The notes under the pieces were generated by a model that searched no databases, had not been told where the DNA came from, and saw nothing but the letters and a program-made list of their open reading frames with translations. A program made the position numbers and the translations under genes. Source: Octopus sinensis (taxonomy: Eukaryota). From it: 25,674 nt of DNA. Below are positions 8,336 through 15,541 of this stretch, in pieces. Location of the stretch: the NCBI RefSeq assembly GCF_006345805.1, contig NW_021836011.1:1-25674 (forward strand), in the 5' to 3' direction. Position 1 is the first letter of the stretch. Every line of letters begins with the position of its first letter.

Positions 8336-8679
8336 TAGGGTATAAACGGCTGCATGTGTTGAGGGATGAATTTTACCAGCTTCATGGCTAAGGGTCGGGG
8401 ACGGATAGCAGACACAACGAACGAGTTGTCTGTATAATCTCTCCTGGAAGAACAGGGTCGGAAGGAACAAATTCTAATTTTGTGTTTGATTCTTCTAGTC
8501 CTCATTCCTTCCTAGGCATCCACAAGCCGTGAGTGTTTATACTCGGAGTTTTTTCTTGTTCTTGTGGCCTTCCAAGGCTTCTGAATCTAATCCATCCGCT
8601 CACCCAGTTATACTACGCGGTGGAGCTGTGGATACAATAAATGTTCTCCCTCCACACGCTGGATACTAGATTATGAAAT

Positions 8680-8981
8680 ATTTCTTTATTGCCCACTAGG
8701 GGCCGACAAAGATGGGGACAACACAGCCTGATTTGGGGTCAGCTGTTCGATATGTAATTACAATAAAAATGAAGTTAAAAATGAAAGCATATATAAACGA
8801 ATGGTTATACATTACAAAAGGACAATAGAAATGGAGCGGTGTTTGGGTTCAGCCCCGACCCCACGAGCCCCAGTTCTCCACTGGTACTTTCCTGACACTT
8901 TATAGCATATTCACGAGATTCCAATCACTCGAAACACTCGTGCTACACACTTCCATCTTTTCGTTGAACACCACCACCGCT
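8680..8981 (-). mobile_element. 5'-truncated L1/Tx1-like LINE 3' end (ORF2 tip plus 3' UTR)
   Basis: Perfect 14-bp TSD CTAGATTATGAAAT at 8666-8679 and 8982-8995. Minus strand encodes KRWKCVARVFRVIG, similar to ERWVNCARMSSING in the 24452 element. Ends CCCCTAGTGGGCAATAAAGAAAT. Confidence 0.8.
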
Positions 8982-9092
8982 CTAGATTATGAAATCTAAC
9001 ACAAATAATACATTCACAGCAAGAAACGTATTAAGCAGAAATTAGAAAAATTGTTTAAAAAAAAAAGTACAAAAAAAAAATGAACTAAACTA

Positions 9093-9508
9093 ATAGATGC
9101 AGGAGTGGCTGTGTGGTAAGTAGCTTGCTAACCAACCACATGGTTCCGGGTTCAGTCCCGCTGCGTGGCATCTTGGGCAAGTGTCTTCTGCTATAGCCTC
9201 GGGCCGACCAAAGCCTTGTGAGTGGATTTGGCAAACGGAAACTGAAAGAAGCCTGTCGTATATATGTATATATATATATATGTGTGTGTGTGTGTGTTTG
9301 TGTATGTATGTTTGTCCCCCTAGCATTGCTTGACAACCGATGCTGGTGTGTTTACGTCCCTGTCACTTAGCGGTTCGGCAAAAAGAGACCGATAGAATAA
9401 GTACTGGGCTTACAAAGAATAAGTCCCGGGGTCGATTTGCTCGATTAAAGGCGGTGCTCCAGCATGGCCGCAGTCAAATGACTGAAACAAGTAAAAGAGT
9501 AAAGAGTA
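9093..9508 (+). mobile_element. SINE S1, full length, near consensus
   Basis: A-box-like TGGCTGTGTGG, B-box-like GGTTCAGTCCC, internal (TA)n(TG)n, tail ...AAGTAAAAGAGTAAAGAGTA. Confidence 0.95.
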
Positions 9509-9718
9509 AACTACTTGAACGGAAACGAGGATTTGCAGCTAAAACTAAAAGCTTAAACTATACAGTGTGGTCCAAAAGTCACACGCAAAATAAGTTCAGT
9601 ACGCTCCGAAATTGTCGAAGACATGCTTCAGTTTTTTCAGAATTGAATAAAATAATGAAATAATGATGAATACACACGTACTTGTACATAACAAAATAAA
9701 ATAAATAATAGAAAACAT

Positions 9719-9997
9719 AATTTTGTGTTTTGGGAGAGTCGTTATGCCAATATTAACACACGCACTGGTTCAATTCCACTTCTTTGCTATTAGTCAATTG
9801 GTTAAATACTAATTAATCGGTTGTTTGTTTAATTTGGTTAAACAGTAAGTCATTTATGTTGGTTTTTGTTTGTCGAAGCTTTTTAGTTGCTACTTGCAAC
9901 CTTTTCAATGACTTTTGAATTAGTCCGCTACTAATAATAAATTGAACCAGTGCGTATGTTAATATTGGCGTAATGGCTCTCCCAAGACAACAAAATT
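9719..9997. mobile_element. MITE-like element with about 57-bp imperfect terminal inverted repeats
   Basis: 9719-9775 (AATTTTGTGTTTTGGGAGAG...GCACTGGTTCAATT) is the approximate reverse complement of 9940-9997. AT-rich non-coding interior; TSD not clear, so the superfamily is unassigned. Confidence 0.8.
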
Positions 9998-10139
9998 TGA
10001 TTGAAGACACAAATTCACATAAATAATCTTGCAGATAGAAAAACGAGGTAAAAATAATAATAACGCAATATAAAATGTCAAATGTTTAGGTGCTTGACTT
10101 AGGGCCCACCCTGTAAATCTAGATACTTAAGCACCAAGT

Positions 10140-13144: not shown

Positions 13145-13290
13145 TTAATCCAAACATGAAAACACAACAAGATGAGGACGTGGAACAAATATAGTATTAT
13201 TGGACGCTCAGGAAGGAAGGGAAGAAGAGGGTTTTACGTTTCGAGCGGAGCTCTTCGTCGGAAACATAGAAGGAAAGATCCAGAGAAGGG
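13145..13290 (-). mobile_element. Short non-autonomous, probably Penelope-associated repeat carrying a hammerhead-like motif
   Basis: Minus strand CCGACGA-A-GAGC(TCC)GCTC-GAAACGT...GCGTC; a related copy lies at 23265-23447. Boundaries approximate. Confidence 0.55.
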
Positions 13291-13656
13291 AACACAGAGG
13301 AATATATATATATATATATATATATATATATATATATATATATATATATATACTGGCACCTTACAGTTCTTATCGAAGAATTATCTAGAAGAACTGTCTG
13401 TTGTCAATCCTTTGTTGGGAAGAATCGGTGACAGACCAACAAAGGTGAAAACCAGTTTATCAGAGAACTAAACACTGAGAAAAAAAAATGGAAGAACTGA
13501 ACATCATGGAAGGCGATTGGAACAAACAACCCCACCCTAAAACATTGCTGTCCTCTCGTCGATTACCAATGATGTCCAAGGTGGAAAGAAAAACGCGTAA
13601 GACTTACACAACACTGCAAGGATGAAGATCGCCTTCGATAGCGAAGAATAACCATT

Positions 13657-14111
13657 CTTTCACTCTTTCACTTGTTTCAGTCATTTGACTGAGGCCATGC
13701 TGGAGCACCGCCTTTAATCGAGCAACTCGACCCCGGGACTTATTCTTTGCAAGCCCAGTACTTATTCTATCGGCTTATTTTGCCGAACCACTAAGTGACG
13801 GGGACATAAACGCACCAGCATCGGTTGTCAAGCAATGCTAGGGGGACAAACACACACACACACACACACACACACACACACACACACACCACACACACAC
13901 ACACACACACACACACATATATATATATATATATATATATATATATGACAGGCTTCTTTCAGTTTCCGTCTACCAAATCCACTCACAAGGCTTTGGTCGG
14001 CCCGAGGCTATAGTAGAAGACACTTGCCCAAGGTGCCACGCAGTGGGACTGAACCCGGAACCATGTGGTTGGTAAGCAAGCTACTTACCACACAGCCACT
14101 CCTGCGCCTAT
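13657..14111 (-). mobile_element. SINE S1, full length, near consensus, long internal (CA)n(TA)n
   Basis: Reverse-complement match to 9093 and 21052 across head, centre and tail. Confidence 0.95.
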
Positions 14112-14339
14112 GATTACAATCATTTAACATATTTAGTAGTCTACTCTCGGTCGACCAGTCTTGAAAAAAAAAACCTCGCAAACAGTCCAGAGTTCTTGCA
14201 GACGAAGAAAAAATTAGTCATCAACTAATATTGGTTTTCTTTTACCGCATGTAGGAGTTAAATCTCATTAATGTACTCAGCATTAAGTATGCTTTCACCT
14301 ACATTACTTCATATTCAAATCTTTTTACATACGCCATTC

Positions 14340-14900
14340 TCTCTCTCCTCCTCGCCACCATCTATCTATCTATCTATCTATCTATCTATCTATCTATCTA
14401 TCTATCTATCTATCTATCCTTTTACTCTCTCTCTCTCCTCTCTCTCTCTCTCTCTCTGTCTGTTTATATCTCTATCATTCTATCGCTCTGACACGTACGC
14501 AGAAATCCTTCTTTTTCTCTTTTTTTAACTACTCTATCGCTGTCTTTCTGCTTATTTCTGAATAATTTTATCAGTTTATCTGACGCACACAAATCCTCTT
14601 TCTATCTATTTAACTGTCTGTTTCTCTCTCTCTAAATATATATCTCAATCACACTATCTAACACACACTTACACCCTCTCTTTCTGTCTATTTAACTGTC
14701 TGTCTCCCTACCTCTATATCTCTCTGATCGTATCTGTGCCTCTCTATTATCGTCTGCTTCACATCAGTCTAACAGTTATTCTCTCTCTCTCTCTGTTCAT
14801 TGTTTATTTTTCTGTCTTAATTGTCTGCACAAACTCTTATCTATATTTATCCCTACATATTAGCTCACAATCACTCTTTCTCTCCCGCTTTCCCTCTCTC
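14340..14900. repeat. (CT)n/(TATC)n pyrimidine-rich low-complexity tract
   Basis: Directly visible. Confidence 0.85.
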
Positions 14901-15111
14901 GTTCGAAAGTTTCTTTAAGCTTCCGTTTAGCAGTCAAGAGAAGAAGCTCCGAACTCTTCAAAGATAAAATAACTTTCCTACAGACAAAATTTATGTATCA
15001 GAAATGTAATCAGTTTACTCCTCTTACCTGTGGTATACCTGCCAATTTACTCCTGTGACTTGGGCTATACTGGCTACTTGTAAAGCTATTCCTATAACTA
15101 TTAACAATAAT

Positions 15112-15541
15112 AGCTTCAAATTTAGGCACAAGGCCAGCAATTTCGGGGCTAGGGTAAGTCGATTACATCGACCCCAGTGTTCAACTGGTACTTATTTTAT
15201 TGACCCCTAAGGGATGAAAGGCAAAATCGACCTCGGCGTAGATTGAATTCAGAACGTAAAGACGAACAAAATGTCGCTAATCATTTTTGCTCGTCGTGCT
15301 AACGTTTCTTATTTCTTTATTGCCCACAAGGGGCTAAACATAGAGGGGACAAACAAGGACAGACGAAGGGATTAAGTCGATTACAGCGACCCCAGTGTGT
15401 AACTGAAACTTAATTTTTCGACCCCGAAAGGATGAAAAGCAAAGTCGACCTCGGCGGAATTTGAACTCAGAACGTAACGGCAGACGAAATACTGCTAAGC
15501 ATTTCGCCCGGCGTGCTAACGTTTCTGCCAGTTCACCTCCT
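15112..15541 (-). mobile_element. SINE S2 dimer: head + tail-A unit, then a head-truncated tail-B unit
   Basis: Junction at 15310/15309 (...AAAGAAATA|AGAAACGTTAG...). Flanking direct repeat TAACTATTAA(C/T)A(A/G)TAAT at 15095-15111 and 15542-15558 (15/17 identical). Confidence 0.88.

Follow-up and report, generated by a model that had tools for sequence, protein, structure and literature searches.

The sharing of 3' tails between short and long interspersed elements (SINEs and LINEs) has a known exception in the L1 clade of LINEs: a survey listed 58 SINE/LINE pairs, 3 of them with L1-clade tails, despite more than 800 L1-clade LINEs, and the three SINEs were ZmSINE2 and ZmSINE3 of maize and SINEX-3_CR of Chlamydomonas (Ohshima 2012/2013; PMC3472496, PMC3747384). 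Here we describe an animal case in a 25,674-nt stretch of the Octopus sinensis contig NW_021836011.1, all of which is called the window below. An earlier note on this DNA had proposed that a SINE and an L1/Tx1-like LINE of a cephalopod have a common 3' terminus. It is likely, in our view, that an octopod SINE occurring in two tail variants is copied in trans by two related LINE families of L1/Tx1 type, through stringent recognition of a terminal module.

Several described systems resemble this locus in part. In the maize/sorghum (ZmSINE2/ZmSINE3) and Chlamydomonas (SINEX-3_CR/L1-1_CR) cases, as here, the SINE end is held in common with an L1-clade LINE. In maize/sorghum the common end also folds into a hairpin whose stem shows compensatory changes and whose loop is conserved, which was taken to mean stringent recognition within the L1 clade; in this it is like the octopod tail, although the octopod hairpin is shorter (4 bp, CUUGU loop). 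Those pairs involve plant and algal L1 elements, the Chlamydomonas pair at least being poly(A)-ended, whereas the octopod host is an animal and its LINE looks Tx1-like, with a tail that ends in AAAGAAAT or (ATT)n. The crocodilian SINEU/Tx1-Mar system (Kojima 2015; PMC4494074) is likewise an animal SINE thought to be mobilised by Tx1-clade LINEs. However, that proposal came from common targets and 5' heads derived from small nuclear RNA, and the element has a poly(A) end, while the link in octopods is a structured tail that is not poly(A) (PMC4494074). Eel UnaSINE1/UnaL2 and zebrafish ZfL2, the experimental model of stringent recognition, have a conserved SINE-LINE 3' stem-loop followed by a short terminal repeat; they belong to the L2 clade, and retrotransposition assays proved that they need the stem-loop, whereas the octopod pair is known from sequence alone (cited in PMC3747384, PMC4176376). 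Mammalian L1 with Alu/B1, the relaxed case, is also an L1-superfamily LINE mobilising a SINE derived from an RNA polymerase III transcript, but it recognises poly(A) and there is no specific common tail, in contrast to the specific, non-poly(A) tail found here.

In octopus itself, the abundant SINEs OK, OR1 and OR2 were described as tRNA-derived (Ohshima & Okada 1994, cited in PMC4758252, PMC3531059), and the portion of the literature that is accessible names no partner LINE for them. The window SINE may belong or be related to one of these. Papers on octopus repeats report families of L1-Tx1 together with SINEs that are very abundant and for the most part 'unclassified', with no partner analysis (PMC13282606), and the octopus-brain LINE paper centres on an RTE element. 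SINEs make up ~8-12% of octopus genomes and have been linked to genome reshuffling and neural transcripts. The searchable literature holds no description of this octopod pair, in keeping with the suggestion of the earlier note that it is possibly undescribed; prior annotation in Repbase, Dfam or SINEBase is possible. The kind of system is a known one, a tail-sharing SINE/LINE pair, here with an uncommon partner clade and a testable hairpin.

The shared 3' terminus

The SINE end at 15310-15334 (TATTTCTTTATTGCCCACAAGGGGC) and the LINE end at 8679-8703 (TATTTCTTTATTGCCCACTAGGGGC) are identical at 24/25 nt, exactly as quoted in the earlier note. In SINE sense the 25-mer reads GCCCCTTGTGGGCAATAAAGAAATA and is found with 0 mismatches at 15310-15334 (minus strand), with 1 at 8679-8703 (minus) and with 2 at both 660-684 and 844-868 (plus), the last two being the ends already said to differ by 2 nt. 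The motif GGGGACAA on the plus strand (TTGTCCCC in sense) immediately precedes the 25-mer in the 15310 SINE and in the 8680 LINE, so this claim, too, is confirmed in the sequence. With a looser pattern, a fifth and more diverged tail is detected at 24977-24993 (plus), the terminus of the LINE fragment 24452-24998. Similarity is not restricted to the 25-mer: the 15310 SINE is identical at 39/46 nt to the 8680 element, at 41/47 to an O. sinensis LINE copy (locus L004) and at 44/54 to an Argonauta hians LINE copy (locus L005), that is, over 46-54 nt at 81-87%, with alignment scores of 29-33, where the best of 200 shuffles per comparison reached 12-14. Because these scores far exceed the shuffled ones and 100 dinucleotide-preserving shuffles gave zero matches to the 25-mer against its four real sites, the sharing is not due to chance, and the common SINE-LINE 3' terminus holds. 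The tail-A SINEs (the variant of the 15310 copy) and the LINEs have a homologous terminal module, TTGTCCCC..TCTATGTTT..G[C/G]CC-CUUGU-GG[G/C]Y-AATAAAGAAAT. None of the tails has a poly(A) end; they finish in ...AAAGAAAT(A) or in (ATT)n.

The LINE member of the match, assigned to a family B, is a 5'-truncated copy at 8680-8981 (minus strand) that aligns along its length to L004:6770-7069, on O. sinensis chromosome CM016876.1. It consists of a remnant of the second open reading frame (ORF2) of ~20 codons with one frameshift (8914-8981, minus), the ORF2 stop TGA (8911-8913, minus) and a 3' untranslated region (3'UTR) of ~230 nt (8680-8910, minus) ending ...GGCCCCTAGTGGGCAATAAAGAAAT(A), in which the tail hairpin GCCC-CUAGU-GGGC lies at 8691-8703 (minus). 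The remnant peptide ends KRWKCVARVFRVIGIS, compared with ...ERRLHVARVLGMKDSS at the end of the 356-aa ORF2 C-terminus of L004; the stop context TCGTGA coincides, and the final 63 nt are 84% identical between the two. A 14-bp target-site duplication (TSD), CTAGATTATGAAAT on the plus strand, flanks the element as exact repeats at 8666-8679 (3' copy) and 8982-8995 (5' copy), and the tail therefore belongs inside the inserted unit. Borne out by this enclosing TSD and by the stop and 3'UTR alignment to L004, 8680-8981 is a retroposed LINE 3' end, as had been claimed.

These duplications also bear on the idea that the shared 3' sequence is flanking target DNA of one repeated insertion site. Tx1-clade elements are often target-specific (PMC4494074), and the elements studied here stand head to tail, family A (see below) ending with (ATT)n, all of which would suit such an origin; yet the TSDs at 8666-8679 and 8982-8995 lie outside the tail and different copies are flanked by unrelated unique sequence, which leaves this idea with hardly any credibility. 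Target preference as such has indications in both directions. The (ATT)n ends of family A, the units arranged head to tail and a perfect tandem array formed by a related LINE point to it, while the 8680 LINE and the SINE arrays, whose targets are unique and unrelated and whose TSDs are of ordinary length (10-14 bp), point away from it.

The second LINE, of family A, is also 5'-truncated and was recognised at 24452-24998 (plus) through tblastn and phmmer relatives and its tail motif. It has an ORF2 C-terminal remnant of 279 nt (24452-24730, plus), a stop codon (24731-24733, plus) and a 3'UTR of ~265 nt that ends with ...CAGCCCTTGTGGCCAATAAAAAGAAT, then (AAT)n; its tail hairpin is at 24975-24987 (plus). 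A word-indexed protein search with the 93-aa remnant gave no match and a full HMMER scan was needed: phmmer returned 148 relatives, the longer ones with RVT_1 and zf-RVT domains, and the closest relative (P0001) is 72-73% identical in amino acids to the remnant (tblastn, E 5e-39). In the earlier note 8680-8981 and 24452-24998 were taken as parts of one LINE. This was rejected, as families A and B are ~50% identical in amino acids over ~350 residues of the ORF2 C-terminus and their 3'UTRs can be aligned only across the last ~50 nt; they are two families that cannot be merged into one consensus.

Beyond the window, the tail was present on 9/9 recovered LINE 3' ends, which represent five or more lineages (with aa identities of 45-82%) of Octopus, Argonauta and unassigned assemblies. 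This is a small sample, made up of the window's two copies, L002, L003 (partly), L004, L005 (twice), L017 and L018/19. The ends read ...GGGCCCTTGTGGCCAATAAAAGAAATC(ATT)n in L002 (a JGI contig), ...TTGCCCTTGTGGCTAATAAAAGAAATA(ATT)4 in the full element of L005, ...GGACCCTTGTGGTCAATAAAAGAAT(TAT)n in its second fragment and ...GGGCCCTTGTGGCTAATAAAGAAAT in L004; L017 and L018/19 (Logan assemblies) have degenerate versions of the tail followed by (ATC)n, and L003 retains the core only. In all nine, the tail is ~220-320 nt from the ORF2 stop with no SINE body upstream. A tail-pattern scan of metagenome contigs gave 7 matches, all of them chance occurrences in unrelated contigs and none octopod.

This constant position without a SINE body argues against flanking target DNA and also against a secondary SINE-LINE chimera. 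On the latter account the tail would not be the functional terminus of the LINE and would not be recognised, having been acquired from SINEs by template switching or another SINE-to-LINE transfer. Head-to-tail chimeras within single TSDs show that joined complementary DNAs are frequent here, and one partial copy of the LINE-B 3'UTR (10480-10629, minus; 98% identical to 8711-8860) is without the terminal 31 nt, that is, the tail. On the other hand, nine LINE copies of at least five lineages carry the tail at about the same distance from the stop, the divergence of the module follows the LINE lineages, and the 8680 TSD encloses UTR and tail as one unit; a SINE-derived tail is accordingly regarded as improbable. 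The partial copy lies in a local patchwork duplication (10480-10876, 6684-6924 and 8711-8860): next to it, 10637-10876 is 97% identical to 6684-6924, and the order of the pieces is unlike that of their sources.

Clade of the LINE partners

The structure of a family A element could be followed in A. hians, where L005 is near-complete with ORF1 and ORF2. ORF1 (639 aa) overlaps the start of ORF2 and contains a CCHC knuckle, CHRCGLPGHIRSGC; ORF2 begins with an N-terminal Exo_endo_phos domain and, after two frameshifts, continues with RVT_1 and zf-RVT. No RNase H and no restriction-like endonuclease were found in ORF2 by a Pfam scan. Against solved structures in PDB, ORF2 matched human L1 ORF2p best: the endonuclease and linker are colinear (query 22-536 to L1 5-524, E 8e-13), as is the reverse transcriptase (RT) region (E 5e-22). 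Matches to R2 proteins were weaker. L1 endonuclease chains solved on their own were matched as well, and the same search gave no endonuclease of other LINE clades at E<=0.01. ORF1 was less informative, with only a weak zf-CCHC match in Pfam (E 0.02), no match among solved structures and, when compared by BLASTP with the corresponding part of a fish relative, similarity limited to the knuckle. Full-length fish relatives have two RBD_ZCCHC3 and zf-CCHC (ORF1 type) joined with endonuclease, RT and zf-RVT.

The published inventories agree with such a placement. ORF1 variants with RRM/zf-CCHC have been described as consistent with the Tx1 clade (PMC5203782), the recently active LINE types of Octopus vulgaris are RTE, Dong-R4, CR1, L1-Tx1, Hero and R2 (PMC13282606), and Tx1 elements are the representatives of the L1 superfamily in molluscs (PMC10294476, PMC11203168). 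L1-Tx1 is the sole L1-superfamily type in octopus and mollusc LINE inventories (PMC13282606, PMC10294476, PMC11203168). By domain architecture, solved-structure matches, these clade lists and elimination, families A and B appear to be of L1/Tx1 type, and the architecture fits what the earlier note had claimed. On these grounds we infer the Tx1 subclade label. The cephalopod host was also correctly named: it is an octopod, with nearest relatives from O. sinensis and A. hians.

The tail sharing could be real and the LINE could nevertheless belong to another clade with an apurinic/apyrimidinic (AP) endonuclease, such as I/Nimb/Ingi, Jockey/CR1/L2 or RTE, which would make this an ordinary stringent pair. 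ORF1 has no Pfam match beyond its weak CCHC knuckle, and the L1 match discriminates weakly, the full-length ORF2 structures in PDB being those of L1 and R2 only. Database names are uninformative as well: the ORF2 relatives and their cluster members are all 'hypothetical' or 'reverse transcriptase domain-containing', with no clade information. Set against this are the zf-RVT knuckle after the RT, the absence of the RNase H expected for I/Nimb/Ingi, the bicistronic organisation with a CCHC ORF1 (RTE has a single ORF) and an Exo_endo_phos_2 match (the Jockey/CR1-type model) that stays under the cutoff. Moreover, colinearity with L1 ORF2p extends across the linker between endonuclease and RT, L1 endonuclease chains are matched with none from other clades at the same threshold, and L1-Tx1 is among the published active LINE families of octopus (PMC13282606). 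We regard another clade as unlikely, though it is the most serious of the alternatives, and retain the L1/Tx1-type placement.

Tail hairpin, SINE heads and SINE arrays

Within the tails, RNAalifold (16 tails) predicted a single consensus element, a stem of 4 bp with a 5-nt loop. Pairs were counted in 19 loop-anchored tails, namely SINE tails A and B, LINE families A, B and C (the last introduced below) and the Argonauta SINEs. Across these, 90.8% of cells are paired and double-sided changes occur in 3/4 pairs (CG/GC; GC/CG/AU; GU/GC/AU/UA), whereas the CUUGU loop and the closing C-G hardly vary. Covariation scores 0.547, compared with 0.211 for shuffles (0/500 reach 0.547) and 0.006-0.11 for controls with slid 3' partners. 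This covariation is supportive of the hairpin and is not proof. The hairpin, its conserved loop and the defined A-rich end match the stringent LINE/SINE pattern, including that of the one plant L1 lineage with SINE partners (PMC3747384).

The 5' part of the SINE was less clear. The earlier note had called it a tRNA-SINE, but the tRNA head is not confirmed: ARAGORN found no tRNA match in the SINE head in the window, Rfam gave none for the window SINE even at E<=10, and only a B-box-like motif, GAGTTCAAATTCC, and a GGCGG...CCGCC pairing could be discerned, both by eye. A second SINE of ~155 nt was found in A. hians (L005) in three tandem and several dispersed copies ending ...TTGTTTGTCTGCTTCTGTGTTCGGCCCTTGTGGCTAATAGAGAAATC. 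Its head, which has no relation to that of the window SINE, matches the Rfam tRNA model below threshold (21.8 bits, E 0.047). As this is a different, tRNA-like SINE with the same tail, it indicates independent capture of the tail by two unrelated SINE heads, which is what selection for LINE recognition predicts. The three tandem units (L005:880-1360) have a LINE-A 3' fragment with (ATT)n on one side and the 5' end of a LINE-A of near-full length on the other, and all units of the block are head to tail in the same orientation.

About 11 copies or fragments of the non-coding ~236-nt SINE are present in the window, with two 3'-tail variants, A and B. Tail A is carried by a full-length copy at 15310-15541 (minus), with the exact 25-mer and the hairpin GCCC-CUUGU-GGGC at 15322-15334 (minus). 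It is 88% identical over 236 nt to the other full-length tail-A copy, at 449-684 (plus; 25-mer at 660-684, 2 mismatches), which is followed by a tail-A unit starting from SINE position 48 (685-868, plus; 25-mer at 844-868). Tail B was observed on a unit from SINE position 48 (869-1038, plus), on a unit from position 16 that abuts the tail-A end of the 15310 copy without a spacer (15105-15309, minus), on a copy at 24000-24212 (plus) that directly abuts the following one, on that following copy at 24213-24451 (plus), which ends in (ATT)9 and directly abuts the LINE-A fragment, and on an older copy at 3970-4190 (plus). Tail B (869-1038, 3970-4190, 15105-15309, 24000-24451) has a CUUGU-loop hairpin on another stem (CUGCC/GGCAG or AGGC/GCCU), as in CUGCC-CUUGU-GGCAG at 24399-24413 (plus) of the 24213 copy; the older copy has AGGC-CUUCU-GCCU at 4153-4165.

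The SINE arrays are bounded by TSDs of 10-12 bp. The array at 448-1038 (plus: A full, A from 48, B from 48) lies within a 12-bp duplication, GTAAGATTCAAG, at 436-447 and 1039-1050, and that at 15105-15541 (minus: A full, B from 16) within a 10-bp duplication, TTAATAGTTA, at 15542-15551 and 15095-15104. In both, unit junctions fall exactly at the tail ends with no spacer. Arrays within a single TSD fit jumping of the RT between tail-bearing template RNAs, or insertion targeted to an existing tail. A further block at 24000-25050 consists of a SINE-B, a SINE-B with (ATT)9 and a truncated LINE-A with (AAT)n(ATT)n, head to tail without spacers; it includes a SINE-LINE junction, and microsatellite flanks make its TSD ambiguous.

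A candidate partner for tail B was found in a third LINE family, C, from ENA assembly ERZ21867824, which is 39% identical in amino acids to family A and has AGGC-CUUGU-GCCU ~35 nt before its 3' end. Tail B, CCCCGAAAATTTCAGGCCTTCTGCCTAC, and the LINE-C 3' region (L013:14130-14183, L016:14100-14162) agree at 28/35 nt by eye, and BLAST gave only exact cores of 13-16 nt, so LINE-C is a suggestive partner at most on this comparison. No octopus-type SINE occurs in 23 kb of the ERZ21867824 genome, which therefore is probably of another species. Full-length LINE-C copies (L013/L014, ctg88761c) follow one another head to tail in a perfect tandem array that repeats every ~6821 bp; ORF1 has ~718 aa and ORF2 1155 aa, and the ORF2 protein cluster holds 732 near-identical sequences.

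Another, commoner repeat of ~430 nt is found in the window at 13656-14111, 9093-9527, 21056-21464, 3505-3867 and ~6 more places. This SINE, distinct from the one above, has a tRNA-like B-box region and contains (AC)n(AT)n internally; its sense strand contains GTCCCCGTCACTTAGTGGTTCGGCAAAATAAG, loosely like the LINE tail module, and its body has GGGGTCGA...AATAAGTAC-like motifs in common with the ~236-nt SINE. A tandem repeat with a 22-nt period (~22 copies) lies at 17958-18449, inside long spurious ORFs.

Proposed mobilisation and its meaning

From these comparisons we infer protein-RNA recognition and mobilisation in trans. The ORF2 protein of the LINE would bind its own RNA via the terminal module, formed by the short hairpin, the conserved CUUGU loop and the A-rich end, and target-primed reverse transcription would start there. 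SINE RNAs that had gained the module would be copied in trans by the LINE machinery. Recognition would thus be of a specific 3' end ('stringent') and not of poly(A). A stringent pairing of this SINE with L1-Tx1-like LINEs is well supported as a reading of the sequences: the covarying hairpin, the lack of poly(A) and the apparent capture by two SINE heads back the stringency proposed in the earlier note, which keeps the status of a proposal.

Several observations weigh against this reading. On the SINE side, the tRNA origin of the window SINE is unconfirmed; the units 660-684 and 844-868 stand in one array within a single TSD, and the three tail-A units therefore represent only two insertion events; and in the window tail-A ends always adjoin another SINE unit and never a TSD directly. 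On the LINE side, the window contains only truncated copies, and the L1/Tx1 placement is one by architecture and elimination. The 98%-identical LINE-B 3'UTR fragment at 10480-10629 has no tail, and L004 departs from the 8680 copy exactly at the stem positions behind the 24/25 match, so that the best partner subfamily for tail A rests on one copy. The hairpin itself has four pairs only, and its covariation amounts to perhaps 4-5 independent events among related sequences from which the structure was also derived.

A wider proposal is put forward tentatively, with somewhat less than even confidence. The CUUGU-loop tail may be the recognition module of the whole octopod Tx1-like LINE radiation, possibly of a wider group, and its variants may have been captured by several unrelated SINE heads (tail A, tail B and the Argonauta SINE), with these LINEs and not RTE driving SINE expansion and their RT jumping between tail-bearing RNAs. 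If so, such jumping would explain the multi-unit SINE and SINE-LINE chimeras within single TSDs, and these LINEs, rather than the RTE element of the octopus-brain literature, would be behind a SINE expansion that accounts for about a tenth of the genome.

For the narrower case, the structured common tail suggests that at least this SINE family relies on the machinery of L1/Tx1-like LINEs, and the tail offers a concrete target for mutation in its stem, CUUGU loop and A-rich end. Among the few pairs with L1-clade tails, the octopod one would come from an animal and have a covarying hairpin that Octopus and Argonauta have kept in common. It would support the view that the L1 superfamily ancestrally recognised specific 3' ends and that this requirement was loosened afterwards in mammals.

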